Assembly (NCBI RefSeq): GCF_020745735.1
Contig: NC_083409.1
Span: 18,434,341-18,498,340 of the forward strand
Direction: 5' to 3'
Source of the DNA: Hemiscyllium ocellatum
Lineage: Eukaryota
Length of the DNA stretch: 64,000 nucleotides
A model generated the notes under the pieces. The model made no database searches and was not told the DNA's origin. It saw only the letters and a list, made by a program, of their open reading frames with translations. Below are positions 1,956 to 32,494 of this stretch, one piece after another. Made by a program: the position numbers and the translations under genes. Numbering within the stretch: position 1 is the stretch's first letter; the number at the start of each line of letters is the position of its first letter.

Positions 1956-1959
1956 GGGA

Positions 1960-3866: not shown

Positions 3867-4212
3867 AGCCGACAATGTCTGTGAATGGCTGAAGATTGTT
3901 TCAGGGGCTACCCAACACGCCACAGAGATTGCACAGTGCAATCCCATCAGCTGGGCCTGGAAGGAATGCGTCGGGTTGTACTTATTGAGTCCTAACAACT
4001 TTCAGTTTCTGTTCTTTTTGGAATCTTGTAATCTACATAAATTTCTGACCAAAGGGATCATTTGAAAATGATTAATGATAGATGATTGTAATTGATTGAC
4101 AGGCCAAGCAACCAATTGTGACAATGACCTGCTGAAATGCAGCCAATCAACTGGGGAGGGGGAGGGGGTCATCTATTTCCAAAGCACACGAAACAGAGAT
4201 TGAATCTTCATC

Positions 4213-4218
4213 TTTATT
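4213..4218 (-). terminator. Paralogous poly(A) signal of the pseudo-C
   Basis: AATAAA on the minus strand in the same aligned position as 27422-27427. Confidence 0.55.
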
Positions 4219-4741
4219 CCCTTTTCCACATTCACATTGACAGAAAAAAAACTGCAACTAACAGCCCAGACAGAGGAAGCTGCTCAAATTCACAGCCACA
4301 ATGGCGTTTGAGGAAAACACTTGTGAAGATTTGCTCAATAACATGAGAATCCTGTCCCTTTAAACAGTGATAAAACCTTAAATTGGAACTGACAGCGAAG
4401 CAGGAAGAAGATCTGGTTTACTGAAGCAGAGACTTCTGAGGTTCACATTGTTTTTATACAGCTGACAGTCTTCAGCAACTTCAAAAGATTTTACTTGGCA
4501 TACAGTCAACACTTCCCAATCAAACACTCCCCAGACAAGGACAACATGAGCTTTGACATAGCGCAAAGTCTCATGATACTGTCGCAGTGACCGACTTCAA
4601 CATCCAAACCTCAGATGTATCTCTGAGCCAGTCCTGAGAAGGAAGAGAGTTGAAATTCAGTGCTGACAATGACCTTTGTCCTGCCAGCTCAGCCCTGTTA
4701 TATTTAAAGTTGTGTCTCCTCTGTGGACTGTCTCCAACACT

Positions 4742-5048
4742 CTACACACATTCTGATCTCCTGATGCTCTTGCTGAGTGGAGAGGGGAGGAGAAGCGAGT
4801 GTTGGACTCCCAGTCAGACCCAGAGAGGGTCAGCAGGCTGCTGACACTGTAGGTGCTGTCCGAAGCTCGCAGGTAGTTGCTGGTCTGAACCCCGTCCGAA
4901 ATGACTGCACCATCCTTCTTCCACTGCACCTCCAGCTCATCGGGATAAAAGTGATTGGCAAGGCACACCAGGGTGGCAGTGCCCTTGGCATTGACCTGCT
5001 CCGGGGAGGGGGGCAGCAGGGTCAGCTTGGGCTGAGAGTTCTCACGGC
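4742..5048 (-). pseudogene. IGKC: Orphan Ig kappa C pseudo-exon with 22-nt frameshift deletion
   Basis: Aligns to 27956-28284 with 6 substitutions (counted by eye) and lacks plus-strand gtcacgtgggtgagggcacagg near 4790. This removes the second Cys and shifts the frame to a stop at 4657. The acceptor is intact, but I found no J or V between 5049 and 27300. Confidence 0.93.
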
Positions 5049-6929
5049 CTGAAAGACAAAAGAAACAATTTTAATCCCTGCAAAGCAAATGGATTTTGAC
5101 TCTCAGTATATTCACTGGCAATACAATCATATTGAACATTTATAGTCAATACAGAATAGACCCGACAAAAGAACAGGTATTGTTTAAATTGCTTCATGGG
5201 ATATGAGAGTCACTGCCAGGACCAGCATTTATTGCCCATCCCTAATTGCCCCTGAAAGAGAAGGGATAGTTTTAGACCATCGTTTAGGGAATGAATGTGG
5301 GCAGCTGGAAGGGCTATCAATGGGGGAGCATTTCAGTGACAGTGATCAGAACTCAGATTGAGTGTACGGATGGAAATGGAGAACAATGGAGCAAGTGTAA
5401 AAGTTTTCATTTGGGAATAAACTATTTTACTAAACTGTGCGGTGATTTAGCAAAGTGGACTGAAATCAAGTACATGGTGGAAAATCAGTGTCAGGGCAGT
5501 GGGAGACCTCGAAGGATGAGACAGAGATTGTTCAGAATCTGTTCCCACAATGAGTAAGGGTGAGACTCCCAAATATAGACTCTCAGCCTGGGATGTCAAA
5601 AGGCAGCAGAGTAGGGAAGACCAAACAGTGATGGTGATGTTGGTTATCTGGAGATCAAACCTGCAGAAAGCTGAGAGGAGGATAGAAAATGCAGGGGTGA
5701 CATTGAACAGGACCTGAGGAAGGCAAAGAACTGACAGGATGAAATATGTCCAACTGAATCAGGGAAATCCCAACGAACAAGAGGATTGAGGTCATGTACT
5801 GACATGGATTGGGAACTGGTCGGCAGACAGGACAGAAACAACAAGTCTTTTTCTGAATGGCAGGTAGTTACCAATTGTCATACTACAGGGGTCAGTCCTT
5901 GGTACCCAGTTATTCATAATATACAATCATAGAATCATAGAGACCCAAAAGGCCCATCAGCCCATTGTGTCCAGACTGGTCAAAAAAATAGCAACCCAAT
6001 AATTTTCATCCATTCTTCCAGTATGAGGGAATTAGATGTGGTATGTGTTCAAGAAGGAATAAAATATTGTTCTTAGGATTAAAGGGATCAAAGAATGTGG
6101 GGAGAAAGGAGGAACAGGGGATTGTGTTGGATGATCGGCTGTGATCATATTGAAGGGTGGAGCATTCGAGGTGTGTAAAATGATGAGGGCCCTGGACAGA
6201 GTGGGTAGGAAGGACTGATTTCCATCAGCAGAGAAGCAATAGCTATGGGGAGAGATTGAAATGAATTGGGGCAGGGTTTGAGGGGAGTTGAGGAGTAACT
6301 GTTTCCACCCAGAGGCTGGTGAGATCTGGGACTTACTGACTGAAAGGGTGGGAGAGGCCAAAACCATCATCACATTGAAAAAACACTTGAATATTCACTT
6401 GAAACAGCGAAACCTCCAGAGCTATGGAGAAAAGCTGGAAAGTAGGATGGAGATCAATACATCTTTAACAAACCTGCTATCACCCACAGATCAGGAGAAC
6501 TTTATCTGAGAACATTGGAGCAGACTTGGATCCACACACTTCATTGGGTGTCCATGTGGAAGGTTCCAGATTACATTTCAAACCTTGCTGCACACCAATG
6601 GGCTGAGGTCAAGGGTGAGGCTACAAAGAGTCTCACTGCCCCAGGGTCAGCCAAGGTCACTTCTCCTAATGACTCAATGACCCCTGGAAGGTGAGAGTAC
6701 ACGGACAATGGGTGAGGGTCAGGATCAGGAAGCTCCAACCTTAAAGAAAGACTTGAATTTGTGTGGCACCTATCCCCAACTCAGGATGCCCCAATGGCTC
6801 TTTCCAGCAGAGTGTGCACAGTAAGATCCCAAACACATGATGATAATTAGCAGGGAAATAGATTTTTATTGATTTTGATTGGGGTATAAGTATTGACCAG
6901 GGCACTGGGGGAACTGCCTGCTGTTCCTC

Positions 6930-7680
6930 CAATGGTGTCATGGAATGGCATCTTTCACAACTGAAGGATTCCCAGTTCATCCAAAAAAAGTATAGTTCCT
7001 TCAAAGTGGAGTTGCAGGTCGATAGTGTGGTGAAGATGTTGTTCAATATGCTTTCCTTTATTGGGCAGTGCATTGAGTATTGGAGTTGGGAGCTGTTGCG
7101 GCTGTACAGGACATTGGTTAGGGCACTTTGGGAATACTGTGTGCAATTCTGGTCTCCCTGCTACAGGAATAATGTTGTGAATGTTAAAATGCTTCAGAAA
7201 AGATTTACAAAGATGTTGCCAGGGTCGGAGGGTTTGAGCTATCTGGAGAGGCTGAATAGGCTGAGGCTATTGTCCCTGCAACTTTGGAGGCTGAGGGGTG
7301 ACAATATAATGGTTCATAAAATCATGAGGGGCATAGATAGGGTGAATAGAGAAGATCTTTTCTCCAGAGTGGGGCTGTTGAAAACTAGAAGGCATAGGTT
7401 GAAGGTGACAGTGGAAAGATTTAAAAGGGACCTAAGGGCCAACCTTTTCATGTGGAGGGTGGTACATGTATGGAATAAGCTGCCAGAAGAAGTGGTGGAG
7501 GCTGGTAGAATTACAGCATTTAAAAGGCATCTGGATGGGTATATGAATAGGAAGAGTTCAGAGGGATATGGGCTAAATGCTGGCAAAGGGGACTAGATTA
7601 ATTTCGGATATCTGGTCAGCATTGATGAGTTGGATTGAAGGGTTGGTTTCCGTGCTGTACAAATCTCTGACTCTAACTGA
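6930..7680 (+). mobile_element. CR1-type LINE 3' fragment
   Basis: ORF 6940-7596 contains [19 protein letters not shown]...VVHVWNKLPEEVVEAG (CR1 RT C-terminus). Confidence 0.88.
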
Positions 7681-9574
7681 AGTTCAATTGAACCCTTAAC
7701 ACCTCAGACTCTCCCAAAGACATTTATAGACAGTTTTGTTTGAAAACCAGTCACTGTTACAATGTCGGGAAAGTGGCAGCCAGTTTCTACTCAGCAAGAT
7801 CCCATAAAAGCAATGAGATCAAAGACCACTGTTAATGATGCTGGTTCAAAGATAAATATTGTCCTGAACTCAACTCAAAGACCCAATAATTCGGTTGAGT
7901 TGGATGGAAAATGAGGAAATAGAGTGGAAAGGAGCAGGTAGGTTGGTGGTTAGTGATGGGATTGATTGTTACCAGAAAATAAAAGGAAGGGGCAGAATTT
8001 TTGAATATCAAAGGAACCATGTGCAGGGAAAATCAATAATAGAACAAACTTAAAGAGGTTTTATCTAAATGCATGAACCATTCCGAGTAAGGGAGACAAA
8101 GTGATGCCACAAATTGAGGTAAATTGAGTTTCCAAGGGATTTAAACTAGTTAAAGTGGAGGAGGGCTCAGGAGAAGTTATTCAGGTTTCTGGAAGATATA
8201 ATAGGACAGAGAGTACGGAAAGGATCAAGAGTTGAACATCAAACACAAGAGATAAGAGGACAATGATGGGAAGAAGTGCAGTCAATGCAGGAATGAACTT
8301 GTAGTGCAGATTGAATCTGGCAGGTATGATGTTGTGGGTATCACAGAGATATGGCTGTCAGGGGCTCTGGGCTGGGAACTAAATATCCAAGGATATATGT
8401 CCTATCAAAAGGACAGGCAGATGGGCAGAGGGGCAAGAGTTGCCATTTTAGTAAGAAATGAAATTAAATCAATAGCAAGAAGTGATATAGAGTCAGAAGT
8501 AGAATCTGGGTGGGTAGAGTTGAGGAACTGCAAGAAATAAAGAATCTGATGAAAGTTATGTCCAGGTCTCCAGGCTGTAATCAGGATCATGATCAGGAGG
8601 GGACAATGGGGAACACAATAATCTGATGCAAATTCCCCATCAACGCTCACCCATCCCTTAGGCACAGCAAGATCAAAAGCCAAGAAATTCAAATCAACTG
8701 TTTGGGAGCCAGAGCCACTGGGAACCCGAAATTGATGAATATGACCAGCAGGACCTTGTTACTCAGAATAACAATTGCATAAGAACAATTTGGGAAATAA
8801 ATATTCCATAAATTAGACTTGGGTTTTCTTTACTCTTCAAATGAGATGGAATTGCCCCGTGTGTCCCTGGAGTCAGATTGAGAATGTTCAGTCCGGGGGA
8901 GTCTGGGAGTCACGGCTGGGGGGGACAGTCAATGATAAACTGGTTCCACTTTCTGCTGTCATATTCTGTAGCCCCTGGGCTATCTCAGTGACAACCATCC
9001 AGGGCTCAGGGTGGATTCCAGAGCAGCTCATTGTCCTGACTTTGTGTTCCTCAGTCCACATGTGGCTCCAGCAATCTCACTCCATGGTTCTCGTATCAGT
9101 GGGAACCATGGGGCTGAAATCTTATCCAAACAGAATCTCACACAGCGGGGAGGCTGCTGGTGGATCAGAAACCCCTTGGATTCAGTCCCAGATTCCACTG
9201 TGGCTCTTTCATTCAAACACAGCATTAGCACACTGACACCACATTCAGAGGGCAATCCTGAGATGGGGCAAGTTTGGTTCTTGATTCCAATGTGAGGAAA
9301 TGGGGGCTGGGTGTGAAATGTCTAGTCTGAAACTGGTGGGGGTACTTTATAATGAAGAATAGAAACTGATGTCAGAATAAAGTCAGGTGTTGATGGGAGT
9401 GAGGAATATCTCAGTGATCTGTCTCCAGAATCCACAGCCTACACACATCCTTCTGTCAGACCCTGAAGGCTGAGAAACAGCTCCTTGACATCTAACATTT
9501 CTCCAACTTTCCCAGAAATGGTGAAATATTTTCTTTGTCAGTGATTCCCTGGGACAGGACATATTAAAAAGTGC

Positions 9575-11187
9575 ATTTTAGAATGGATGGCATTGAAGTA
9601 TGTAGGGAAGAGGTTTTGGGAATACTGGAAAGGATGAAAATAGATAAGTCTCATGGGCCTGATGGCATTTATCCTAGATCCTCTGGGAAGCTAGGGAGGA
9701 GATAGCAGAGCCATTGGCCTGGATTTTTATGTTGTCATTGTCAACGGGAATAGTACCAGAAGACTGGAGGATGGCGAATGTGGTCCCCTTGTTCAAGAAG
9801 GGGAGTAGGGATAGCCCGAGTAACTATAGGCCAGTGAGTCTGACTTCTGTGGTGGGCAAAGTCTTAGAGAGAATTGTAAGGGATAAGATTTATGAACATC
9901 TGGATAGGAATAACGTGATCAAGGATAGTCAGCATGGTTTTGTGAAGGGCAGGTCGTGCCTCACAAACCTTATTGAGTTCTTTGAGCAGGTGACTAAGGA
10001 GGTGGACGAGGGTAAAGCAGTAGATGTTGTGTATATGGATTTTAGTAAGGCGTTCGATAAGGTACCCCATGGTAGGCTAATGCAAAAACTATGGAGGTAT
10101 GGCATTGAGGGTGCATTAGAGGTTTGGATTAGAAATTGGCTGGCTGGAAGGAGACAGAGGGTAGTAGTTGATGGTATAGGTTCATCTTGGAGTGCAGTTA
10201 CTAGCGGTGTACCTCAAGGATCTGTTTTGGGACCATCGCTTTTTGTTATCTTTATAAATGATCTAGAGGAGGGGCTTGAAAGCTGGGTGAGTAAGTTTGC
10301 GGATGACACAAAAGTCGGTGGAGTTGTGGATAGTGAGGAAGGATGTGGCAGGTTACAGCGGGATATAGACAAGTTGCAAAGCTGGGCAGAAAGGTGGCAA
10401 TTGGAATTCAATGTAGCTAAGTGTGAAGTCATTCACTTTGGTAGGAGTAACAAGAAGATGGATTACTGGGCTAATGGTAGGCTACTTGGTAGTGTGGATG
10501 AGCAGAGGGATCTTGGTGTCCATGTACACAGATCTCTGAAAGTTGCCACCCAGGTAAATAGTGCTGTGAGGAAGGCATATGGTGTACTGGGCTTTATTGG
10601 CAGAGGAATTGAGTTCCGGAGTCCTGAGGTCATGTTGCAGTTGTATAAGACTCTGGTGCGGCCTCATCTGGAGTATTGTGTGCAGTTTTGGTGGCCATAC
10701 TATAGGAAGGATGTGAAGGCATTGGAACGAGTGCAGAGGAGGTTTACCAGGATGTTGCCTGGTATGGTAGGAAAATCGTATGAGGAAAGACTGAGGCACT
10801 TGGGGCTGTTCTCATTGGAGAAAAGAAGGTTTAGGGGAGATTTGATAGAGGTGTACAAGATGATTAGGGGTTTAGATAGGGTAGACACTGAGAACCTTTT
10901 ACCGCTAATGGAGTCAGCTGTTACAAGGGGACACAGCTTTAAATTAAGGGGTGGAAGGTATAGGACAGATGTTAGGGGTAGATTCTTTACACAGCGGGTT
11001 GTGAGTTCATGGAATGCCCTGCCAGTAGCAGTGGTGAACTCTCCCTCTTTATGGTCATTTAAACGGGCATTGGATAGGCATTTGGAAGTTATTGGGCTAG
11101 TGTAGGTTAGGTAGGATTCGGTCGGCGCAACATTGAGGGCCGAAGGGCCTGTACTGCGCTGTATTTTTCTATGTTCTATGTTCTATG
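9575..11187 (+). mobile_element. Young 5'-truncated CR1 LINE with open RT domain
   Basis: 463-aa ORF 9714-11105 (NYRPVSLTSVVGK, QHGF, YMDFSKAFDKV, GVPQGSVLGP, SKFADDTK), ending in a (TTCTATG)n tail. It is absent from the paralogous site at about 26026. Confidence 0.96.
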
Positions 11188-11477
11188 CTGTGGGAAGGGA
11201 ACTGTTGCCTCTCAATGACAAAGCCAATGGAAGGATGTGGAGCTGGCACTGTGAAATGTTAGGGCACAGAGGATGACACCAGAAGCAATTCAATGTTGTC
11301 ACTCTCTGCTTTGCAATTGCTAAACTAGTAATAATTGGTTTTTGCTCACAATTTGGTCTCTTGTATTCGATCCACTTGCCTTTCTTGCTTTGCTTCTTTT
11401 GACTTGAGTCTGTGGGTAGCTCCATCAAAACCCAATTCCCTCACTCTCATCCAGGCCCCTGAAGAGATTAGAGACAA

Positions 11478-11720
11478 AAGAAAGTGCAAATGCTGGAATC
11501 CAAGGTTGACAAGCAGGAGGCTGGGAGAACACAGCAAGCCAGGCAGCATCAGGAGGTGGAGAAATCAATGTTTTGGCTGTAATCCTTCTTCAGGAATGGG
11601 GGTGGGTTGGGAGGTGGGGGAATGATGGGGGAGCTGCAGATAAAGGGAGTAGTGGGGGGCAGGGTGGTGAGATGGGGATAGGTGAAGGTAGGTAGAGGAT
11701 TGGTTGATGGGAGGGATGAA
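11478..11720 (-). mobile_element. Penelope terminal-repeat fragment with degenerate hammerhead
   Basis: Same repeat family as 21290-21450 and 61360-61500. Minus strand ATTC-CTGAAGA-A-GGAT-TAC-AGCC-AAAACATT at 11562-11597. Confidence 0.65.
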
Positions 11721-12964
11721 TACAAATTACTCTCCCATCGACTCATCAGGTCATATTCTCTACCATTCTCAACCTATCCCTACCTCAACACCCTGCTCCG
11801 CCCCATTCCCTTTATCTCCTTTTCCAATCTTTCCTCATCACAGCCCACTCATTCCAGGGATCAATCGGGTAAAATTCCTGTGAACCACCTCCGATGCATT
11901 TATATTCTTCCTTCAATAGGGAGACCAAAACTACCCTCAGTATTTGAGATGTGGTCACACCAATGTCCAGGAATAACTGAAACATCGCAGTCTCACTTTC
12001 TGGTCCTTAAGCACGTTTACACTCTCTTGTACCAGGCTTTTTACTGTCCATCTCTAATTGCCCTGGACCTGGTGGTGATTAGCTCCCATCTTGAACCCCT
12101 GCAGTCAGTCTGCTGTTGGTAGACCCACAATGTCATAGGAGGGGAATTCCAGGATTGTGACCCAGTGATGATGTAGGAACTGCTTCATATTTCCAAGTCA
12201 AACTGGTGAATGACTTGGAGAGGAACTTGCTGGGGTGATGGTCCCGTGTACCTGCTGTCCTTGTCCAAATATAAGTGGTCATGGGTTTGGAAGCTGTTGT
12301 CTCAGGATCTTTGGTGAATCTCTGCAGTGCATCTTGTAAATAGTACACAGAGCTGTTACTGAGCGTCGGTGTGGGGGGAATGCATGTGTGTGAATGTGGT
12401 TCCAATCAAGCGGGTAAACTTGTTTTCAACAAAATTTAAATAAAATAATATAAAACAGCATAAAATTAAATAAAATATAATTTTGCTGCCTTTTTGATAA
12501 AACATCACTGAACCCAAAAAGTTAAACCTCCTCTCCCACAGAGGCTGCACCTGTTCCCTTTCTCCAGCATCGTGCTTCTATTTGAGATTTGCAGTATTTT
12601 GTTTATGTATCTGTTTTAATGCCATTGGTTATAAGAGAAGCATTGGTCAGCACACTGGGGAGATTTTCCCTGAGATGGTCACAAAGCCCTTATATTCACA
12701 TCGACCTGAGAGGGCAGTGGTTTAACCGATCATCCAGCAGATGGCGTCTTTGCCTTTGCCAGCCTCAGGACAGTGCTCCAGTGTCTGGAGTGGGGCTTGA
12801 AAACCTGCAGGTTCAGGTGACGGTGTTATCACTGAACCCATCTATTCTTTTCTGGGATGTGGGAGTCACTGGCAAGACCAGCATTTGTTCCCCATCCCTA
12901 CCTGTCCTGAAACTGAGTGGCTTCTTTAGCCTTTTAAATGGCAGGTAAGGGTCAGCCACATTAC

Positions 12965-14463
12965 TGGAGTGCTGTTTTGTACATTCTGTGATACATGGAG
13001 ACTCTGTCAGTATTGGGTATCGCAAGGTATGTTCCCTCCATTGAACACTTTCCAACACACTCTCTCCATCTTTCTTTACTCCTTATTGACTCTACTACAA
13101 TTGTCCCTGTTCCCCCACCCCGTCCCGGTCCCAGAGGGATTGATGGCCGGAGTTCATGACCCCGCACTGTGTGAAGGTTGGTGTGAAGTGAGGCCAGTGT
13201 GTTGGAGATTGGGCTCCTGCCTCAGGCCCAGGTGTTGGGGCCTGTTCAACAATCTGCACATTGTCCTTTTCCTCTTTCTGAATGAACTGGATCAAGTTGC
13301 AGCAATGAGCTGGCGACAAGGTGTCTTGTCTAAAATGTTTCCAGCACTGGGCACAGAACTGGCTGAGTAGGAGGAGACAGAGGGCAGTGATGGGGGGATG
13401 GTTTTCAGAATGGAGGGCTGTGACTCGTGGTGTTCCACAGGGAACTCTGCTGTATATGGTCTACATAAATGATTTGGAGGAAAGCGTAGCTGGTCTAATT
13501 AGTAATTTTACAATTGATACAAAGATTGGTAGAAGTGCAGAGAATGAGAAGGATTATCTAGGATATGGCAGGATAGAGATGCTTGGACAGAAAAATGGCA
13601 GAGGTAGTTTAATCCAGACAAATGTGAGGTGATGCATTTTGGAAGGTGATGTACAGGTGGGAATTATACAGTGAATGACAGAATCCTTTGGAGTATTGAT
13701 ATGCAGAGGGATCTGGGTGTGTATGTTCACAGATCACTGAAGGTGCCAGCACAGGGAGGTAAGGCAGTAAAAAAGGCTGATGGCCTGGTTGCCTTCATTG
13801 GAAGGGGCATTGAGTGTAAGGACAGACAAGTTATGCTGCAGCTTTATAGAACTTTAGTTCGGCCACACTTGGAATAGTGCACACAGTTCTGGTTGCATAG
13901 AACTGCACACAGTCCAAAAAGAAGGATGTGGATGTTTTGAAGACGGTGCAGAAAATGTTTACCAGGATATTGTCTGGTATGGGGGGGATTGTAGTTCTGA
14001 AGAAAGGTTGGAGAGACTGAGTTTGTTTTCACTGGAATGCAGGAAAATGAGGTGCGTCCTGATAGAAGTTTACAGAGTTGTGAATGGGATAGGCAGAGTG
14101 GAAATAATGAGACTTTTTCCCAGGGTGGAGGGGTCAAATACTAGGGGACGCAGGTTCAAGGTGCAGGGGTTTGGGGGAATTCATTGTAAAGAGGTGTACA
14201 AACCAAGTATTTCACACAGAGGAAGTTGACTACCTGGAACACACAGCCAGAGGAGGGGGTGGAAGCAGACACAATAGAAGTATTCAAGAAATTCCTGCAC
14301 TAATGCATGAATAGGAAGGGAATAGAGGGATATGAATCCTGTCGATGAAGATAGTTTCAGTATAGAAGGGCAAAATGTATCAGCACAGGCTTGGAGGGCC
14401 GAAGGGCCTGTTCCTGTGCTGTATTGTCCCTTGTTCTTTGGTCCCTGCTGTTGAATTGGATTC
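12965..14463 (+). repeat. Left arm of a local inverted duplication (partner about 16596-17970), includes a CR1 3' fragment
   Basis: Shared non-CR1 flanks on both sides (gggcctgttcaacaatctgcacattgtcc and gtccctgctgttgaattggatt) occur reverse-complemented at about 17690 and about 16600. Confidence 0.85.
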
Positions 14464-15019
14464 TCGGGAGCCAGCTCCATATGAAGAGCCTGTTCTCATT
14501 CTTTTGTTGGAGTTCATGGGGCAGCTGCTGCTTCCTTGTTACGTCACTGATCAAACCAACAATGGGGAAAGCCTCTTGATATTTTAAATACACTGTCTGC
14601 AGGAAAATGTTTGGCTGAGGTTTTAATATTGTTTAATAAGATAATGACATCAATACACCAGTGTTCTTTACGGCTGGGAGCATTTAACATCATAGTCCTT
14701 GTTTCAAGTGGACTCTCACTCATGATAATACAGTTTTCAATGTTTCTCTCCCTTTATGTGTTACGAAGAGATTTGCCAACATGTTTTGGTGAGGACAGTG
14801 CATCTTCATTGGAGGATTGGAAGATGATATCTTCAGGACACACACACTAAACAACCCCACCACCCTGTGGCCGACCATTTCAACTCCCCATCCACTTGCT
14901 AAGGATATGCAAGTCCCTAGGCCTACTCCACCGCCAAATTGAAGCCATCTAACAACTGGAGGAAGAACACCACATCTTCCACCTTGAGACCCTCCAATGA
15001 CACGGAATGAATGTTATAG

Positions 15020-15950: not shown

Positions 15951-16595
15951 GCGCTACATGATTTCACTCTGTGCTGTGGTAACAGTGTGTTAAAGCCCAG
16001 TGCAGGTCATCCGTCATCTCAATCGGAGCACAGGGTCTAAGGTTGGTCAGTAATGTCTGGCCCCAGAACAATAACACTGACTGACTGGAGACAACCCAGA
16101 TCAAGTCCCAGTGAGAGTGCTATTGACCTTCACACTCAAAGCCCACCAAGGAGGTGGTTGTTGTTAGTTTCAATGTTGCCACAGATTAAATTCTCCCAGA
16201 GATTCATAATTCATTCCAGATTTTAAACAAGGGAGGGATGTTGTGGGGAGACAGATGGGAAGGCATGGAGAGGAAACAAAAAGGAGAGAGAATTGCCCTT
16301 CTGTTACACTGTTCATGAGCTCAGGATGTTCAAAGATGTTTTACAGCTAATGGAGAAATTCCAAAGTCTAGTCATTGTTGTAATATGGGCGGGGGAATGA
16401 CAGCTCCCCCGAACAGAAGGAATGCAAAAACTGCTATCACTATGAGAGTGGAAAGGTCGGGTGGAGACAATGACAGTGACACCCTCCACAGAGAGAGAGG
16501 GGAAAGTACGCAGACACATTTAAAACTGTATTAACACAAGTGAGAAATCAAACAAACACCCACTCCATCATGAGTCTTCCTGCATTGTTGGTTTG

Positions 16596-17970
16596 AATCC
16601 AATTCAACAGCAGGGACCAAAGAACAAGGAACTATACAGCACAGGAACAGGCCCTTCGGCCCTCCCAGCCTGTGTTGACACATTTTGCCCTTCCTCACCG
16701 AAACTGTATTCACCTACAGGATTCATATCCCTCTATTCCCTTCTTTTCCGTGTATTCATCCAGGTATTTCTTGAATGCTGCTATTGTGTCTGCTTCCACC
16801 ACTTCCACTGGCAGCGTGTTCCAGCCCTCACCACCGTTTGTGTGAAATACTTACCTCACACATCTGTTTTAATTCCCCACTGCACCCACCCACCCCCTCC
16901 CACACCTTGTACCTGTGTCCCCTAGTAACTGACCCCTCTACCCTGGGAAAATCCCTCATATCAGACAGCATTCTTGGTACATTTTTTCAGTACCCTCTCC
17001 AAAGCATCCACATCCTTCTGGTCATGGTGACCAGAACCATATGCAATATTCCAAGTGTGGCCAAACTAAAGTTCAGTAAAGCTGCAGTATAACTTGTCTA
17101 TCCTAATCCTCAGTGCTCCTCCCAATGTAGCCAAGCCTGCCATTGCCTTTTTTACTACCTTAGGTGCTGCCACCATCAGTGATCTGTGAACATGTACACC
17201 CAGATCCCTCTGCATTTCAATACTCCAATGGATTCTGCCATTCACTGTGCAGGTATTCTGCCACGTGCTTCATCTTTCAAAATGCATCATCTCACATTTA
17301 TTTGGATTAAACTTCATCTGCCATTTTCTATCCATGCATCCAATTGATCTATGTCCTGCTGTATCCTCTGATAATCTGATCATTAACTGCAACTCCAGCA
17401 ATCTTTGTGGCATCCACAAACTCATGAATTAGACTAGCCATGTTTTCGTCCAAATCACTTATGGAGACCATGGACAGCAAAGGTACCATCATTGATCCCT
17501 GCAAAACCCCACAAGACACAGCCCTCCATTCTGAAATCCATCCTTCCATCACTATGCTCTCTCCTCTGACTCAGCCAGTTCTGTATCCAATGCTGGGAAC
17601 ATTTTAGACAAGACACCTTGTTGCCAGCTCGTTACTGCAACTTGATCCAGTTCATTCAGAAAGAGACAAAGGACAATGTGCAGATTGTTGAACAGGCCCC
17701 TACACCTGGGCCTGAGGGAGGGGCCCAAGCTCCAATACACTACACATGAAATTTAAGACAGAGTGGGGTCATGAAGTCTGTCCATATGTTCCTTTGGGAC
17801 CGGAAAGGAGTGAGGAAATAGAGGCAATTGTAGAAGAGTCAATAAGGATTAAAGCAAGATGGAGAGCGCGTTTTGGAAAGGGATTAGTGGAGAAAATATA
17901 CTTTTTGCCACCCAACGTTGACATAGTCTCCGTGTATCACATCATGAATAAAATAGCACACTGTGAGGAC
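16596..17970 (-). repeat. Right arm of the local inverted duplication
   Basis: Reverse complement of 12965-14463, roughly 80% by eye. Confidence 0.85.
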
Positions 17971-18064
17971 AATCAAAAGTTACACCAAAGTGCTTATTTT
18001 TGATATATCACAGCATGCAGAGCATTTTTATTGTGGTGCAATTAGGTATCCTGGTTCAAAAGAT

Positions 18065-18066
<2 letters not shown>

Positions 18067-18100
<34 letters not shown>
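18067..18100. repeat. (TC)17 microsatellite
   Basis: Direct reading of the sequence. Confidence 0.97.
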
Positions 18101-18103
<3 letters not shown>

Positions 18104-20136
18104 TGTACAGATCCAGCTGGTTCGATCCTCACAGAGCCCCAGTTTATTTGGACTGTACAGTAATGTGGAAATGTCGATGGTGGACTGGGGTACACCTGAT
18201 AAAGGAGCAGCGCTTCAGAAGCTTGTGATTTCAAATGAATCAGTTGGGCTAGAACCTGGTGTAGTGAGTCCTCTGACTTTGTATTGTTCAGGCACAGTGA
18301 AACAGCTGCTTTCTAGTTACTATGGAGGACTTGCACAGCTGCTGAAGACTATGGGTAATGACTCCTTCCATTAGCTGCAAACACACCAGTAGTCATTCCA
18401 GTGGATTCCAGTGGGAATGACCAATCAGTTGCTTTGACCTAGTTCCCCAGTTAATCAGGCCATGGCTGACCTGGAATACATTCTCCCTTTGTCCTGTAAA
18501 CCGTACTGCCCTGAGAAAATGGATATTGAAACCCAACCTCAACAGCTTTTTATTTTGGATTGAGGGTTCCAGATTTCCATCACTCTGTCGGAAAGAAATT
18601 TTCCTGAAATCGTCTGAATTACAATTTTAACAACCCTCTTGTTCTGGACTCTGGGACTGGAAAAAACAATTTACATCAACACTGTTCATCACCTCTGGGG
18701 AAAAGTCTCACTGATGTAACCTGTTCTTTCTCATTACCAGTTTCTGATCTGAAGGTGACATCACAGGCTGGATACTGAGAGGGTGGATCCTGTTATCGGG
18801 CAGATGAGGACTGGAGGGCAGGTTTAACACAAACCAGTCTCCAGTTTAAAGGGAAGGAGGGGTTTTCTTGCTGAGGATTGATAGTCTGTGGAATTCTCTT
18901 CTCTACATGGGAATGGAGGTTCACTCATGGAGTTGGCACAAGGTTACAGTCGACAGATTTTTTGATGAACAAGGCAATTAAGGATAATGGGAGGGGGTGG
19001 GGAAGCAGAAAGTACGGGCGAGACCATAACCAGATGAGCAGTGATCTTCTTCATTGGCACAGCAGCTCCCAAAAGGCCTGCTCCTGCTCCTGGGCCCTAT
19101 GTTCTGACAGAGGCTGCAGCAATTCTGGACCCCCATCTTTCCTTTGTCACTCACTGACAAAAATGTAATTTTAAAATGAAAATTATTTTTTTGAACAAGA
19201 CCAACTCAATTCTTGTTGCAGTCATTTTCTTTGCTGGCTTTTAATTTCAACAGGGTTTTAGCAACACGTCATTTGTCTAATGTTGCAGTGGAGACAGACA
19301 CAAGGCAGTGAGGCCTCAGAGAACACCGAGAGCTTTCACTCTGCACAACAAGGCTGTCAGCACAAGCATCTGGTGACAGGATTGTAGGGGGTTGAAAAGG
19401 AGAGAGTCACGGAGAAAAGAGACCTTATAGTTCAAAATAAAACCTCTTCCTATATTCCCACACTTTAATGAATTAATGTTAGAGGATTAGAGACCCAGAA
19501 CGGTGAGAGTGTGCTGGCTCAGAGGCTAAAAGGCAGAGAGCAAGGAGCTGCATTATTCCTTCTCATTGTTATTTCTGCTTCATCATTGGTGAGCTTCATA
19601 AATATTGCCCACCCCCAGTTGCTTGGACGAAGTTCTTTGCTGAGCCAGATCATGGGGTCATTAAAAATGGATCATGTCACGGTGGGGCAGGAGTCACAGA
19701 CCAGGCACCCTCGCCAAAAGAACATTTGTGAACATCACATTGAATTTCATGTCTTTTTTTGTACAAATTCCAGCACCTTCCTTTCCAGATATTACATGGC
19801 TCACCACCGCCCTCTCCAGGACAATTAGGGGAAGGCAACCAATAACCAACACGTCAACGCCCGCCCCATCCCGGGAGAAATCAGGAGAAATGATGTAAAA
19901 TTAAAATGATCAAACTGGTGAGGCTTGAATTCATCTCTTTGAAAGACTGGACTCTCGGTCAGAAACAGAGCCATGACATGGGTGAACCTGGTTTGTCAGA
20001 CTGAAAGGTGGAGAGTCCTTTGGATTGACGCTGGGATCAGCAAAAAAATGAATTGCACTCAAAGATTGAACAAACAGCTATCAAAGTGGGTCACCAAACT
20101 GCAGAGTACAGCACTTGCAGCGACGCGTCCCCACCA

Positions 20137-20443
20137 CGGTGGCACAGTGGTTAGCACTGCTGTCTCACAGCGCCTGAGACCCGGGTTCAATTCCCACCTC
20201 AGGCGACTGACTGTGTGGAGTTTGCACGTTCTCCCCGTGTCTGCGTGGGTTTCCTCCGGGTGCTCCGGTTTCCTCCCACAGTCCAAAGATGTGCGGGTCA
20301 GGTGAATTGGCCGTGCTAAATTGCCCGTAGTGTTAGGTAAGGGGCAAATGTAGGGGTATGGGTGGGTTGCGCTTCGGCGGGTCGGTGTGGACTTGTTGGG
20401 CCGAAGGGCCTGTTTCCACACTGTAAGTAATCTAATCTAATCT
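20137..20443 (+). mobile_element. tRNA-derived SINE (HE1/V-SINE-like), full length
   Basis: A box ggcacagtggtta, B box gggttcaattcc, core tgtggagtttgcacgttctccccgtgtctgcgtgggtttcctccggg, CR1-like 3' tail ggccgaagggcctg and (TAATC)n end. Confidence 0.9.
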
Positions 20444-21289
20444 CTCTCCTTGCTGTTGCCCTTCCCTAACTGTCCTGGAGAGGGCGGTGGTGAGCCATGA
20501 GTTTCTCGAAGAGAATCTGACAGAGGGACAAGGTCATGTCCTCGGCCTGAGCACAACTGCCTGACCTGCTGTGCTTTTCCAGCACCACACTTTTTGACTC
20601 TGAGTAAACTATCCTTCAGGAGAATGAGCTGTGGCACATGGGAAAACCTGGGAGTATTGGAAAGGCATCAGCAGCCTGGTCAGCCTGCAGAGGGGCAGAA
20701 ACAGATTTGATGAATGAGATGATATCCTTTCAGAGCTACACAGTTTACATTGTTACTGACGGTGACTCCATGGGCAATGCTCCTGCTTCAGAGTCAAATG
20801 GTCATTGCATTGAAAGCCACCTCAGAAATGAGAACACAGAATCCAGGCTGAGACTGCAGTGAACTCTGACACAATGTTATGTATGGGATGTTCATTTAAA
20901 GCCCCACCAGCACCATCCAGACCCCAATCCCTCCACCTCAGGGGGCTCGACAAGATCCCATTCTGAAGAGATTCCCTCAGGTATCCTGCTCAATATTCAA
21001 CTAATGCCACCAAAAGGATTTGTCTCATCATTCGTTTGCTGATTTTGGGACCTCAGCATTTTGTCTTGTGAAGGTGATTGCACTGTGCAGGCAGCTTTAA
21101 ATATCCTGGGACGATTACAAAAAAACACTGCACCAACAAGTGTTCTTTCTTCCTGTCACATAACAGGGGAGTAAATCAGTAACTGAAAATCCACACTGAA
21201 GGCAAACACTGAAGCTTCAGCTGAAAGGCTTTTTGCACCACGTTAACCTGCGCCCTGGGCATTTCCTTCCAGTGTCCGAGATCGTTACC

Positions 21290-22830
21290 AGGCTGGGATG
21301 GAGGCTTACAGGAGGCTGGAAGAACACAGCAAGTCAGGCAGAATCTGGAGGTGGAGCAGTCAACATTTCGGGTATAACCCTTCTTCAGAACTGCAGGTGG
21401 GGGTAAGGGGAGCTGCAAATCAAGGTGGGATCGGTTGTTTGCGTGGGTGGAGGGGAATGGTGGAGTGGAAGGTATTGATGGATGAACACAGGTAGAGGGT
21501 TGGAAGTGCTTAGTCGATGGGAGGAATGAATCCATATGGTGGCTGGAAGGGAGGGTCCGTAAGTGGAATAGAATGGAGGAGGGGGACTGGAAAGGGAGTC
21601 GAAAGTTGGGAAAGGCAGGCTTTTTGAAACTGGAGAACTCAATGTTGATTCCTCTGGGTTGTAAGCAACCCCGGGCAAAAGATAATTATTTGTTCCTCCA
21701 ATTTGCAGTCTGATTGCTTATGGTAATGGAGGAGGCAGAGGATAGTCATGTCAGAGAGGGAATAGGAAGGGGAATTGAAATAGGCAGTGACTGGGAGGCC
21801 AGGTCAGCCTTTGTGAGCATGGCTGAGATGCTCATCAAAACATGTCCTTAGTTTACGTTTGGTCTCACCGATGCAGAGAAGACCACAACGGGTGCACCGG
21901 ATACAATAAACTAGGTTGGAGGAGAGGCAGGTGAACCTCTGTCTGACCTGGAAGGACTGGGGCCCTGGATGGAAATGACAGGGTTTGGTGTGTGGGCAGG
22001 TTTTGCATCTTTTACAGTTGCAGGGGAAGGTACCAGGGTTTTGTTGGGGGAGGAGGGGGTAGGTGTGAAGTGTGGTGAAAACCAAGGATTGGCAAAGGGA
22101 ACAGTCCTTGTGGAAGGCAGAGAGGGGTGGGGAGGGGAAGATGTTCTTGATAGTGGGGTCGAGCTGGAGTTGTCAGAATTGTTTGAGGATGATACGTTGG
22201 ATGCGGAGATTGATTGGACGTAAGGTGAAGACAAGGGGGACCCTGTCTCTATTGCATTTTGGAGGGGAGTGTTTAGATTTGGGGAGCAGAGAATGGAGGA
22301 GGTGCGGTGGAGGGCTTTCTGGATGGCAGAGGTGGGAAAAGTACATTGTTCAAAATAAGTGGACATCTGGGACACTTGGGAGGGGAGCATCTCCTCGTTC
22401 GAGCAGATATCACGGAGATGGAAGAATTGGGAAAACGGGGTGGTGTTCTTGCAGGATACTGGTTGGGAGGAGGTGTTGACCAGGTAGTTGTGTGAGTCTG
22501 TGGATTTACAGTAAATGTCTGTTCCTAGACTGTCACCGGAGATGGAAATGGGGCAGTCAAGAAAGGAGAGGGATTTGTCCAAGATAGACTACGTGAATTT
22601 GAGGGCAGGTTGGAAGTTGTTAGCAAAGTTGATGAACAGCTCCAGTTCAGCCTGAGTGCAGGATGCAGTACTGATGGAGTCACTGATGTAATGGTGGATG
22701 ATTTGGGGAATGGTGCCTGTGCATGTACTGGTGAGGTGTTGTTTGATGTAGCCGACAACAAGCAGACATAGCTGGGACCCATGGCCACCCACTGGATTTG
22801 GAGGAAATGGGAAGAGTTGAAGGAAGCTGA
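21290..22830 (-). mobile_element. Penelope-like element, decayed (RT, GIY-YIG, terminal repeat)
   Basis: MGPSYVCL and FINFANNFQPALKFT (RT); CIRCTRCGLLCIGETKRKLR (GIY-YIG); terminal repeat at about 21290-21450. Confidence 0.88.
21357..21393 (-). ncRNA. Minimal type-I hammerhead ribozyme motif with intact core
   Basis: RNA CAGUU-CUGAAGA-A-GGGU-UAU-ACCC-GAA-AUGU-U-GACUG: 5-bp stem I, 4-bp stem II, near-palindromic stem III, GUU cleavage triplet. Confidence 0.65.
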
Positions 22831-25800
22831 CAGATCACATGGAAATGTTTGGAAAAGGTTCACAAGGACACAGTCCAGGCTTCCTGCAAATATCAGCCTT
22901 CCTTCTATTGTAGTGCTTCTTCATAGGAGCTTCTCTATGGCGGTTTCAAGTACACATCCTCCGTGGAAATATCACAGACTTTCTGAAATGGAATGAACTG
23001 AAAGAAGAGAAGGAAATGGGAAGAATTAACCAGACAAGGGTGAGCATCAAGAGAGATGGGAGTGTGTGGGAGACTCTGTGCCATTAAAAAATCCCAAAGG
23101 AGTTTCACAAGAAAAGCTCAAATCTTTACAAGGATTTAACAGGGAGATGACTTACTGACATCAAACAGGTTGGGTGTTAGGGACCCTGTGCCTCTGGTGC
23201 CTAACTCTATATGAGACATTACAGTCAAGGATGGTTGATGTGTAAATAAAGGGTGACTTGATGATGTGGAGTTATTTCATGATCAATGACCGCGGGCATA
23301 GATTTAAGGGAAATGGCAGAAGATTAAGAGGGAATGTGAGGAAACATGCTTTCATGCAGAAGGTGGTGGTAATTTGTAACTTGCTTTCTGTAAGGGTAGT
23401 TGAGGCAGAAGCTCTCCCATAACATTGACGTACTTTGATGTGCAGCTGTGATGCCAAGGTTTACAGGGCTGCGGGCCAACTGCTGGAACATGGAATTAGA
23501 ATAGTGAGGTGGTTGTTCGGCTGGCTTTGGCTCATTGGGCCGAAGGGCCTTGTTCTTGTAGACCTGTTGTAGACATCTGACTCTGCCAGGACTCCAGCAA
23601 TGTGGCTGACCCTTACCTGCCATTTGAAAGGCCGAGCAAGCCACTCAGTTTCAGGGCAGTTAGGGATGGAGAACAAATGCTGGTCTTGTCAGTGACACCC
23701 ACATCCCAGGAAAGAATAGACGGCCTCAGTGGTAACACCGTCACCTGAACCTGCAGGTTTCAAGCCCCACTCCAGACACTGGAGCACTATCCTGAGGCTG
23801 GCAAAGGTAAAGACGCCATCTGCTGGATGATCGGTTAAACCACTGCCCTCTCAGGTCAATGTGAATAAAAGGGCTTTGTGACCATCTCAGGAAAACTCTC
23901 CCCAGTGTGCTGACTAATGCTTCTCTTATAACCAATGGTATTAAAACAGATACAAGAGTAAAATACAGCAAATCTCAAATAAAACAAGATGCTGGAGAAA
24001 GGGAACAGGTGCAGCCACATTAGAGAGAGGAGGTAATAATGTTTTGGATTCAGTGATGTTTTATCAAAAAGAAGCCACAGTTTTTGATGATTTTATTTCA
24101 TTTTAACCTGTTTTATGTTATTTTGTTTTATTTAAATCTTGTTTATCAAATTGCAGCCGGCTTGATTGGCACCACATCGACATATATCCATTGCCTCCAC
24201 ACTGACCCTCAGTAACAGCTGTGAGCACTATCTACAAGATACATTGCAGAGGTTCAGCAAAGATCCTGAGAGAGCACCTTCCAAACCCATGACCACGTCC
24301 ATCAAGAAGGACATGGTAGCAGATACACAGGAACACCACTCTTTGCAAGTTCCCCTCATTGAAATATATCGCTGTTCCTACATTGTTATTGGGTCAGACT
24401 CATGGAATTCCCTTCCTCCGCACATTGTGGGTCTACCTACAGCACACAGACTGTAACAGTTCGAGAAAGCAGCTCAGCGCCACTGTGTACATGACAATGA
24501 GAGATGGACAGTAACAAGGCTGGTGCAAAGTAAGAGCAGGTGTGATTAGGGATCTGAAAGTGAGAATGTGATGTTTCAGTTCTTCCTGGACATCTCAAGG
24601 TTTGTATGAACTTTTGGTCTCCTAATTGCAGAAAGAATATAAATCCATTGGAAGTGTTTCAGAGGAGTTTTACCCGACTGATCCCTGGTATGAGGGGGCT
24701 GTGTGGTGAGGAAGGATCGGAAAGGCTGGCCTTGATCTCACTGGAGTTTCAAAGAGTGGGGGTTTTTCCTGTCCCACTGTATTCTCCAAACCCTTACCTG
24801 ACCCCCTCTTGGGTCATACCCTCCTGCCCCTTACTAACATGGAATTGGACTGCCCAGTCCTGAGGCTTACACCTTCCATCTGGAACAAAGTCTCCAGGTA
24901 GCTCTGACCCTCCCTGATGTATCAGGATTCTTACAACTCAGCTTCCAATCCAAACCCCCTGAGTGGGAGTTGCTGTAGATTTATACAGTCACTACAGATG
25001 TATTTACCCTGAATCATTTCAGTTTAATGAACAAATGCTGATCCCACTTACAAATGAAAGAAATCAATTCTTTCATGAAACTAGTAATTGTCCTCAGTCT
25101 CTGGATCAATGTTTCAGTACTTTTCATTTCTAGGATTTCCCTATTTGAGGTTTCCTAAGCATACTATTTATATGGTTCCTTACACAAAGCTCTTCCCAGC
25201 TGATCTGGTCAACAGACTCCTGTCCCCTTGTTTATTATTTTGCTATTTTCAAACCAAGTGCATGTGCAGGCTCCCATCAGCTGAAGTGACAGTTCCAAAC
25301 CAGTTTGGAAAAGCAAAGGTAGACCTCCTTCCCACAGTTCACCGAACTCCCACATTGACCAAACCTCCCAGCATCCCCCTCTGTGCCAGCTGCACTGAGT
25401 GCCAACTGCAGGATATAGGCTGCCCTGTATTTATACTGGTGCTAATTGATATCACTTTGTTCTGTCGTGCTATTAGAGTCATAGAGACAGCACAGAGACA
25501 GAACCTTCGGTTCAACTTGTCCACGCTGACCAGATATCCCAACGCAATCTAGTTCCACTTGCCAATGCTCAGGATCTGGGTTAAGTTAGATCATTTCTCA
25601 GTCTGAAGCTTCCTTCTTTCAGCCTGAGAAATACGTTACTTTTATAACCAACAAATGTGACTTTAATGCTGGAATCTGTTTTGAAGATTAATGGGCTCAA
25701 TGGTTTGATTCAATGTGGTAAGATAAGAAATATCTGTGTCACTTGCTGTAATTCAGTCTTCTCTAACCAATCTCTTCAGGGGCCAGGATGAGTGTGAGGA

Positions 25801-26994
25801 GATTGGGTTTTGATGGAACTACCCACAGACTCAAGTCAAAAGAAGCAAAGCAAGAAAGACAGGTGGATCGAATACAAGAGAGCACATTATGAGGGAAAAC
25901 CAAAGGAGAGAGTGACAACACTGAATTGCTTCTTGTGTCATCCTCTGCGCCCTTACGTTTCACAGTGTCAGCTCCACATCCTTCCATTGACTTTGTCATT
26001 GAGAGCCAACGGTTCCTTTCCCACAGCCCTTTTTAAAATGCCCTGCCCAGGGAATCACTCAGACAGAGAATATTTCACCTTTTCTGGGAAGGTTGGAGAA
26101 ATATTGGATGTCGATGAGCTGCTTTCTCAGACTTCAGGGTCTGACAGAAGGATGTGTGTAGGCTGTGGATTCTGGAGACAGATCACTGAGATGTTCCTCA
26201 CTCCCATCAACACCTGACTTTATCCTGAAATCAGTTTCTATTCTTCATTATAAAGTACCCCCACCAGTTTCAGACTAGACATTTCACACCCAGCCCCCAT
26301 TTCCTCACATTGGAATCAAGAACCAAACTTGCCCCATCTCAGGATTGCCCTCTGAATGTGGTGTCAGTGTGCTAATGCTGTGTTTGATGAAAGAGCCACA
26401 GTGGAATCTGGGACTGAATCCAAGGGGTTTCTGATCCACCAGCAGCCTCCCTGCTGTGTGAGATTCTGTTTGGATAAGATTTCAGCCCCATGGTTCCCAC
26501 TGATACGAGAACCATGGAGTGAGATTGCTGGAGCCACGTGTGGACTGAGGAACACAACAGTCAGGACAATGAGCTGCTCTGGAATCCATCCTGAGCCCTG
26601 GATGGTTGTCACTGAGATGGTCCAGGGGCTACAGAATATGACAGCAGAAAGTGGAACCAGTTTATCATTGACTGTACCCCCCAGCCATGACTCCCAGACT
26701 GAACATTCTCAATCTGACTCCAGGGACACACGGGGCAATTCCATCTCATTTGAAGAGTAAAGAAAACCCAGGTCTAATTTATGGAATATTTATTACCCAA
26801 ACCCTGTGGAATTGTTATTTTGAGTTCCAAGATTCTGCTGATCATATTGATCAATAGAGTGTCCCCAGTGACCCTGATCTGAATTGCTTGGCTCAGGATC
26901 TTGCTGTCCCTGATGGATGGGTTGGTGTGGAGGGGGAATTGCCATCAGAATATTTTGTTCCAGGGATGGATCAAGTTAGTATAGTGGGTGACAA

Positions 26995-27092
26995 GGTGGC
27001 TCAGTGGTTAGCACTGCTGCCTCATAGTGCCAGGGATCTGCGTTCGATCCCTGCCTCAGGAGAATATCTATGTGGATTTTGCACATTCTCTC
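26995..27092 (+). mobile_element. 5' fragment of tRNA-derived SINE
   Basis: ggtggctcagtggttagcactgctgcctca...gttcgatccc (A and B boxes). Confidence 0.7.
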
Positions 27093-27421
27093 CAAATACA
27101 AATCAAATGCTGTATGGAATATTTACTTTGCAAACCCTGTGGTATTGTTATTCTGGGTAGTAAGATCCTGCTGGTCAAATTGATCAATAAAATGCGAACT
27201 GAACTGCTTGGCTCGGGATCTTGCTGTGCTGAAAGGATGTGTTGGTGTTCAGGGGAATTCCCATCAGATTATTGTGTTCCCCATTGCCCCCTCTATTCTC
27301 CCCTTCCTGCTCCATACCTGGGGGTGGGGTGGAGCTTTTCACTTCGTACACCTATCCCTGAGGACTCAGCTCTGGCCATTCCCAAAGCACACACAGAGAC
27401 AGAGACTGAATCTTCTTCATC

Positions 27422-32492: not shown

Positions 32493-32494
32493 AT

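Follow-up and report, generated by a model that had tools for sequence, protein, structure and literature searches.

A probable partial inverted paralogue of a shark kappa light-chain cluster, with its C block turned against its own flank

An intact kappa cluster and its left-hand relic

The window, meaning the whole stretch of 64,000 nucleotides of Hemiscyllium ocellatum DNA that was analysed, contains a complete kappa V-J-C unit lying whole on the minus strand. This right-hand unit has the composition of a shark kappa mini-locus, with a 12-RSS V, a 23-RSS J and one C1-set exon on the same strand, and homologues of its V occur in Chiloscyllium, Hemiscyllium and nurse shark. In the gene-proximal part of its 3' flank, a segment is tandemly duplicated (26780-26961 / 27113-27280) around a SINE fragment. 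The features of the unit are as follows.

38159-39022, minus strand: V and J together, with homologues in Chiloscyllium and Hemiscyllium
V exon ending at 38669, minus strand: followed by a canonical 12-RSS at 38668-38641
38193-38159, minus strand: J, with a 23-RSS at 38232-38194
27318-31046, minus strand: Block B (UTR, C exon and 3' part of the intron)
28284-27956, minus strand: C exon, within Block B
27422-27427, minus strand: poly(A) signal
27311-27317, unstranded: point p, beside G runs and about 105 nt beyond the poly(A) signal
23587-27310, minus strand: Block F (3' flank)

To the left of this unit lies a relic built from copies of Blocks B and F, designated B' and F'. The original prediction had read 4150-8590 as a direct copy of 27315-31050, a claim that self-BLAST and pairwise alignments proved near base-exact: 4150-8592 is a direct copy of 27318-31046, comprising the poly(A) end, the C exon and 2.7 kb of J-C intron. 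The adjacent piece, predicted at 8600-12975 as an inverted copy of 23590-27300, was likewise borne out, with 8593-12974 corresponding in inverted orientation to the 3' flank from 27310 to 23587. Within B', identity to the right cluster is 82% at 4175-5600 / 27378-28859, 79% at 6166-6990 / 29281-30124 and 68-74% at 7704-8592 / 30134-31046, and its outermost homology can be traced back to 4150, equivalent to 27318. Within F', the aligned segments are 8593/8610-9587 (27310/26961-26014), 11187-11481 (26027-25757) and 11821-12974 (24723-23587). Chance is excluded as a source of this homology, since the E-values are effectively 0. The relic and the sequences between it and the intact unit comprise the following features.

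2790-4149, unstranded: Y', abutting the poly(A) end of B', with a 43-bp x 4.2 tandem repeat at 3689-3866
4150-8592, gene sense minus: Block B' (3' UTR with the poly(A) end, C exon and 2.7 kb from the 3' side of the J-C intron)
4213-4218, minus strand: poly(A) signal of the relic, AATAAA, 63 nt from the block end at 4150 and conserved in the Chiloscyllium punctatum cluster L001
4742-5048, minus strand: pseudo C-kappa exon, with the splice acceptor AG kept
6992-7703, plus strand: LINE 3' fragment in B', left copy only, the right copy running from 30124 straight to 30134
8592/8593, unstranded: novel junction between B' at its intron-side end (equivalent to 31046) and the inverted flank at its gene-proximal end (equivalent to 27310)
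8593-12974, plus strand: Block F' (3' flank, inverted copy of 27310-23587)
9588-11186, plus strand: 5'-truncated LINE in F', left copy only
12969-14463, unstranded: distal left arm X', an inverted copy of 17959-16595 at 81% identity
14464-16594, unstranded: non-palindromic central spacer, where identity drops to ~45%, with a LINE fragment at 15014-15645
16595-17959, unstranded: distal right arm X
17960-23586, unstranded: 5.6 kb present in the right arm only, containing a Penelope-like element (21807-22920) and a SINE-like repeat (20135-20440)

An old inverted duplication

Self-comparison of the window on both strands confirmed the predicted layout and extended the palindrome further, to 14463 / 16595. 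The relic thereby belongs to an old and larger palindrome (8593-14463 / 16595-27310), of which it is the left arm, with the collinear inverted arms, the spacer and the older LINE fragment common to both arms that characterise an inverted segmental duplication. The LINE fragment in X and X' must be older than the duplication, because it is present in both arms. Transposable element fragments sit at the same places in the two copies (30134-31046 / 7704-8592 and 13348-14443 / 17590-16600), which indicates that the copies arose by segmental duplication and not through independent insertions. The LINE 3' fragment at 6992-7703, on the other hand, entered B' after the duplication. The LINE at 9588-11186 retains an intact reverse transcriptase ORF of 475 aa (9678-11102; Pfam RVT_1, E 1.6e-37). 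The possibility that the flank was transposed in inverted orientation out of a direct tandem arrangement was rejected, the spacer at 14464-16594 having no specific homology to the sequence from 31047 onward.

The outgroup allows the original order of the blocks to be established. In the C. punctatum cluster L001, the counterpart of the B' end passes directly into that of the F' start at 15002/15005, so that the collinear order from UTR to flank is ancestral; the two other contigs from this species, L002 and L003, contain V-J regions only. An F-type flank is carried by both L001 and the right cluster, and the ancestor of B' therefore had one as well. Background identity between left and right is similar in all three blocks, at about 77-81% (77% in B, 77-79% in F and 81% in X), and K is ~0.22-0.27 for C block, flank and distal arm alike, which indicates that the three are of one age. 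That the C block has been flipped against its own flank is well supported.

These observations also bear on the idea that B' and F' came from different donor clusters and became adjacent by chance, Y' being the native 3' flank of a cluster subfamily. Read depth, which suggests several genomic copies of Y' and of its join to the UTR, would fit such an origin. However, the ancestral sequence is divided between the two pieces to within 7 bp, both are equally diverged from the right cluster, and B' shares with that cluster, whose flank is F-type as in L001, lineage-specific transposable element insertions that L001 does not have. A chance meeting of two donors is accordingly judged very improbable.

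Junctions and breakpoints

The reads bear unequally on the two junctions by which the original prediction was to be judged. The inner one, 8592/8593, is spanned by an exact Logan contig of 171 nt (8536-8706; sample S9, run X19), and all four junction words sampled are present in 8 runs of two studies; given this contig and the words in reads, the join is not an assembly artefact. An ORF crosses this join, and no record of it was found. The words were seen in organism A only, a weak negative for other organisms with four words sampled. A contig of organism C tracks F' at 94% identity and leaves it exactly at 8591, and could represent either a paralogue or an unflipped orthologue. The outer end at 4150 is bridged, among the matches listed, only by a contig of ~92% identity (X1 record 1, 4056-4189). 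Read depth suggests that the sequence to its left has several copies at an identity of at least 90%, and the join between Y' and the UTR may exist at other loci. That a 4.4-kb piece was misoriented during assembly is extremely improbable. The region is indeed repeat-rich, with no exact contig across 4150 among the matches listed; against this, the inner junction lies in an exact contig of another sample and its words in two studies, the left and right copies are only ~77% identical and could not have been confused by an assembler, and no gap lies nearby, the sole run of N being at 57827-58026.

The two pieces had been predicted to meet at about 27310 in the intact cluster, and the meeting point was located at p (27311-27317), the sole stretch of that cluster found in neither left-hand piece. 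Between them they divide the ancestral sequence at a single point, no more than 7 bp being lost, and the junction of q to p contains at most 4 bp of filler. The second breakpoint, q, is the intron end of B'; it cuts an old LINE on the plus strand within its endonuclease region. At this end of B', an ORF on the plus strand (8256-8537) matches Pfam Exo_endo_phos at E 3.8e-4, which is below the Pfam cut-off, and an ORF past q (31097-31375) has no Pfam match. The cut LINE probably continues past q in the right cluster, as suggested by a degenerate SDH-type motif with a spacing of ~300 bp, the same as in the LINE copy at 49797.

No inverted repeats flank the inverted segment beyond chance-level matches of 14-24 nt within 3600-9100, and inversion by NAHR is thus not indicated. 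The heptamers CACAGTG and CACTGTG are absent at p, at q and at the left-hand junctions, so that a RAG-mediated inversion is not indicated either. No exact match to the CTCF consensus was found, with two one-mismatch cores only. An L1/Tx1-type ORF2 C-terminus is located at 1986-2501, 1.6 kb from the left-hand counterpart of p. It has been considered that p, lying ~45-105 nt past the kappa poly(A) signal by G runs, might be a recurrent fragile site, broken by a retrotransposon endonuclease or in association with termination; here such a cut would have freed the C block and turned it round. This is a speculative reading of low probability which, if true, would mean that antibody mini-loci are regularly remodelled and killed through transposon-driven breakage.

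The original prediction envisaged a complete plus-strand V-J-C sister, convergent with the intact cluster, that lost its C block to a single two-break inversion of 4.4 kb, with a V-J remnant expected to the left of the window. Several features favour this, namely the palindrome with the flank of the intact cluster, the partition at the single point p and the equal age of the blocks. Breakpoint p is divided to within 7 bp. A simple inversion would also place the inverted remainder of the LINE, equivalent to 31047 onward, directly left of 4150, and the sequence beyond 31046 was not found there: positions 1-4150 have no match to 31047-40500 in either orientation, and no reciprocal inversion junction. 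For Y' (2790-4149), which occupies that place, neither the right cluster nor L001-L003 holds a homologue; Pfam and Rfam give no match, and in the rest of the window it matches two short repeats only. A complete sister is also at odds with a window that holds no second V, J or RSS; in 1-4400, none was detected by sensitive blastn against 30500-40500, by tblastn or by motif scans. Of the proposed sister, what is supported is an old inverted copy of the cluster's rear half, the complete unit being an assumption; the reversal of the C block and its split at p stand, and the single clean inversion lacks its reciprocal junction at 4150. The loss of a whole sister gene by one such inversion is therefore unproven, and is considered unlikely.

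Loss of function and gene conversion

With no V or J within reach and a C exon broken by a 22-bp deletion, the relic is non-functional. Since the window has no V, J or RSS besides those of the right-hand unit, the relic does not constitute a kappa mini-locus. The deletion, near 4790, removes the second conserved Ig cysteine and shifts the frame, in an exon that is otherwise identical to the live C exon at 302 of 308 positions (98%) and to that of C. punctatum L001 at 285 of 330.

Two tracts stand out from the 77% background identity between the relic and the live neighbour. The first (4643-5048) covers the C exon and is 97.8% identical to the neighbour and 86% to L001. The second lies in the flank:

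8799-9477, unstranded: high-identity flank tract of 680 bp, 98.2% identical to 26790-26120, with a longest exact run of 158 nt

This second tract is only ~72% identical to L001. Such sharp-edged near-identity on a diverged background, for which constraint offers no explanation, suggests that both tracts of about 98% probably stem from recent gene conversion between the relic and its live neighbour. It follows from the flank tract, at 98% here and ~72% in L001, that near-identity of non-coding sequence between neighbouring units is not by itself a sign of regulatory constraint.

Proposed history of the relic

The reading preferred here, and held to be probable, is that the relic is a partial and inverted germline paralogue, derived from the rear half of the kappa cluster next to it, with its C block (q to p) flipped, no longer functional and still converting. 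According to this model, a partial inverted copy would have been made that began at q in the J-C intron, took in the C exon and the UTR, and extended over at least 6 kb of 3' flank. Within it, the 4.4-kb C block between q and p has been turned round relative to its own flank, presumably through breakage and rejoining, with a conservative break at p (a 7-bp window ~105 nt past the poly(A) signal) and a second at q in the old LINE. This flip may have taken place after the inverted duplication, in two steps with the reciprocal end lost, or together with it in one complex event. The dead copy would have kept exchanging sequence with its live neighbour by gene conversion.

The one-step version is possible, if tentative, and suits the observations no less well than a complete sister flipped by inversion. 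A partial copy, from the distal flank through q, would have been inserted by template switching or by joining of fragments, with a break at p leaving the flank inverted and the C block direct; V and J would never have been present and Y' would be the insertion site. Such an event covers the partition at p, the q-to-p junction with its filler of at most 4 bp, the missing reciprocal junction and the lack of V-J, and is consistent with breakpoints that have neither inverted repeats nor RSS heptamers. However, it calls for more simultaneous breaks than a duplication followed by an inversion, the sequence does not demand simultaneity, and the divergences it predicts are the same as in two steps.

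The locus is a case of ordinary decay within a large gene array. In an array of ~200 copies, the "distinct way to lose a cluster" of the original prediction amounts to a modest claim, and the accepted view of shark antibody gene function is unaffected. The locus does offer a base-resolved example of decay in the shark multicluster light-chain array, in which part of a unit is duplicated in inverted orientation, its C block is flipped, a few bases are deleted and conversion goes on. V-less, misoriented relics of this kind will be included wherever "C exons" or "clusters" are counted in shark genomes.

Comparison with known systems

Complex inversions and inverted duplications arise by non-homologous or replicative repair (NHEJ, FoSTeS/MMBIR). 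The relic resembles the products of these processes in having no flanking inverted repeats, at most 4 bp of filler or microhomology and a loss at one junction, although the mechanism cannot be read from one old locus without an intermediate. Palindromes of sex chromosomes are inverted segmental duplications whose arms are homogenised by gene conversion. As in these, inverted arms surround an unduplicated spacer and tracts of high identity lie on an older background; in contrast, the arms are old here (~77-81%), conversion is patchy, the outer block is flipped and one arm is longer by 5.6 kb.

Multicluster light-chain loci with units on both strands are also known from the VL-JL-CL clusters of teleost IgL in zebrafish (PMC3014032), where units facing opposite ways serve to join V and J of intact clusters by somatic inversion. 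The case described here is instead a germline structural rearrangement in a relic, with breakpoints that carry no RSS. In cartilaginous fish, Ig light-chain genes are organised as V-J-C clusters that include non-functional copies, as in the nurse shark (Lee et al., 2000; PMC2193156). The right-hand unit is like these clusters, with one 12-RSS V, one 23-RSS J ~440 bp away and one C exon. The dead copies in nurse shark are germline-joined or point-mutated, whereas the one next to this unit is a V-less rear half with its C block inverted relative to its own flank.

The intact kappa locus and its rearranged copy

Exactly one intact kappa mini-locus has been found in the window, on the minus strand, and no further V-, J- or C-like sequence occurs there besides this right-hand cluster and a C copy to its left. 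The right-hand cluster comprises the following features:

38669, minus: end of the V exon
38668-38641, minus: canonical V-side heptamer, 12-bp spacer and nonamer, directly after the V exon
38232-38194, minus: J-side nonamer, 23-bp spacer and heptamer, directly before J
38193-38159, minus: J
28284-27956, minus: C exon
27422-27427, minus: poly(A) signal

The translated V matches kappa light chains from Chiloscyllium punctatum (up to 92%), Hemiscyllium ocellatum and nurse shark, which places the genome among the orectolobiform sharks. The J-C intron, approximately 9.9 kb long, is crowded with LINE fragments. Upstream of V, two non-coding blocks (44308-44657 and 40755-41030, about 5.3 kb and 1.8 kb from V) are 94-95% identical to 3268-3615 and 8375-8651 of the C. 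punctatum kappa contig L002, in surroundings of 77-88%. Just past the tail of the live gene, at 26780-27280, a stretch of about 180 bp is tandem-duplicated around a 100-bp SINE-like fragment, a repeat with further copies at 20135-20440, 35603-35931 and 53976-54259; the stretch is single-copy in the left relic and in L001, another C. punctatum kappa contig.

Self-comparison of the window has upheld the layout of the original prediction, in which a direct copy of the C block adjoins an inverted copy of the 3' flank:

4175-5600, 6166-6990 and 7704-8592: direct copies of 27378-28859, 29281-30124 and 30134-31046
8610-9587, 11187-11481 and 11821-12974: inverted copies of 26961-26014, 26027-25757 and 24723-23587
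6992-7703 and 9588-11186: LINE pieces, insertions private to the left copy

Fine alignment pushes the block ends outward and sharpens the coordinates, the direct block reaching 4150 (= 27318) to 8592 and the inverted block starting at 8593 (= 27310). The two pieces abut at 8592/8593, any ambiguous filler between them amounting to no more than 4 bp, and 27311-27317, a putative break point past the poly(A) signal referred to here as p, are the only bases of the intact cluster found in neither piece. A 5'-truncated LINE in the relic flank carries an uninterrupted 475-aa reverse-transcriptase ORF (9678-11102), and a partial copy at 55146-55810, 45 kb off, is 94-95% identical, which suggests that this family has been recently active.

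Reality of the junctions in reads

With only about 77% identity between left and right, the assembler could not have exchanged one copy for the other. Sample S9 (run X19) yields a 171-nt read contig that matches 8536-8706 without any difference, and all four sampled 31-mers of a 63-nt query centred on 8592/8593 are present in eight runs from two studies, one of which may represent the source sample of the assembly (S1), the other being separate (S9). The join at 4150 is less directly verified, because the one bridging contig among the listed read pieces differs at 10 of 134 nt; this contig also hints that a paralogous locus has the same join. Among reads over 3700-9300 from a related organism (C, run X9), a 302-nt contig tracks the inverted flank of the relic at 8591-8862, gap-free and at 94% identity, and diverges precisely at the junction, its other 30 letters being unmatched; it may represent an unflipped orthologue or a paralogue.

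Ancestral order and the probable flip

A C. punctatum cluster with 10 kb of flank (L001, BEZZ01000502.1) served as outgroup. Its UTR continues directly into the flank, for which reason the collinear order of the right cluster is ancestral and the left order derived. L001 is matched as far as 15002 by the terminal part of the left direct block (4173), and from 15005 onwards by the beginning of the left inverted one. The left C block and the right-cluster intron share transposable element insertions absent from L001, so the ancestor of the left block was closely related to the right cluster and must have carried this type of flank too. Given that the ancestral sequence is partitioned within 7 bp and that divergences are equal, the inverted flank copy is very likely the C block's own. 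This supports the proposal that, within an inverted sister copy, the C block was turned round with respect to the flank belonging to it: breakage at p would have parted the two, which would then have rejoined in opposite orientation. One idea is that p could be a candidate preferred break site of kappa genes.

The inverted homology extends further, 12969-14463 being an inverted copy of 17959-16595 with a LINE fragment at the matching place in both distal arms. The centre of this palindrome (14464-16594) is non-palindromic, and the right arm is longer by 5.6 kb (17960-23586), a stretch made up in part of a Penelope-like element and a SINE-like repeat. Left and right share a background identity of 77.2% across the C block, 77-79% across the flank and 80.8% across the distal arm (K 0.22-0.27), similar values which indicate one old duplication. 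By 31-mer share, this genome is only about 5-9% diverged from related ones (organisms B to D), so the duplication is several times older than these species splits. The distal block that is best preserved between the arms (96% identity) holds an identical pair of CTCF-like cores, each one mismatch from consensus, which face each other at 12734-12747 (plus) and 23813-23826 (minus); in the live cluster the site is about 4.1 kb past the C exon. Two minus-strand Penelope-like copies, 73% identical and in the same orientation, lie at the left edge of the window (1-1400) and within the additional right-arm stretch (21807-22920); a reverse transcriptase and a GIY-YIG-like C-terminus are seen by eye, and Pfam gave no match.

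State of the relic and probable gene conversion

The relic C exon (5048-4742) has kept its splice acceptor, and a 22-bp deletion causes a frameshift and takes out the second conserved cysteine. Deletion aside, its identity with the live C exon reaches 98% (302/308), compared with only 86% between the live C exon and the L001 one. A non-coding tract of about 680 bp (8799-9477), 1.2-1.8 kb behind the C exon, is likewise 98.2% identical to the right flank at 26120-26790, with exact runs of up to 158 nt, and only about 72% identical to its L001 homologue. Considering the 77% background and the lack of comparable conservation between the cluster lineages, the best reading of these tracts, of which one is direct and the other inverted, is recent gene conversion between the relic and either its live neighbour or a close third copy. 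The near-identity of the non-coding tract would thus reflect gene conversion and not necessarily regulatory constraint. As the deletion sits within a converted tract, it would be the younger of the two.

The second junction and the mechanism

The second break point, q, at 31046 in the J-C intron, cuts an old plus-strand LINE in its endonuclease region. Both copies share the N-terminal part: an ORF at 8256-8537 (Pfam Exo_endo_phos at E 3.8e-4, short of the Pfam cut-off) matches 30742-30988 by tblastn. In the right cluster the element continues, with a degenerate SDH-type motif about 300 bp on, spaced as in the LINE copy at 49797, and reverse-transcriptase pieces at 34123-35437. After a clean two-break inversion the remainder would be expected, inverted, immediately to the left of 4150, and a comparison of 1-4400 with 30500-40500 in both orientations gave no match. 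A Penelope-like element is also present in this leftmost sequence, along with:

2790-4149: 1.4 kb adjoining the poly(A) end of the relic
3689-3866: tandem repeat within this segment, 43-bp unit x 4.2, 94% matches
1986-2501, plus: CCHC C-terminus of an L1/Tx1-type ORF2 (weak Pfam zf-RVT match, E 1.5e-4, below cut-off), with a C-x2-C-x7-H-x4-C zinc knuckle as in such C-termini

At 4044 the assembly has T, against C in every contig aligned there across all four runs, the possible source sample among them; the assembled base may be wrong, or the coverage may come solely from paralogues.

The loss of a complete sister cluster by one inversion has not been borne out, since a clean two-break inversion predicts a reciprocal join at 4150, and its absence contradicts the simplest form. 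The V-J side may have been lost during or after the inversion, or the copy may never have reached past q, one complex event with a break at p having inserted two fragments in opposite orientations. No inverted repeats were found at the ends of the C block and no RSS heptamers at p or q; inversion by homologous recombination and RAG-mediated inversion, respectively, are therefore not indicated. The left structure is a well-resolved, ordinary relic of a large, fluid gene array.
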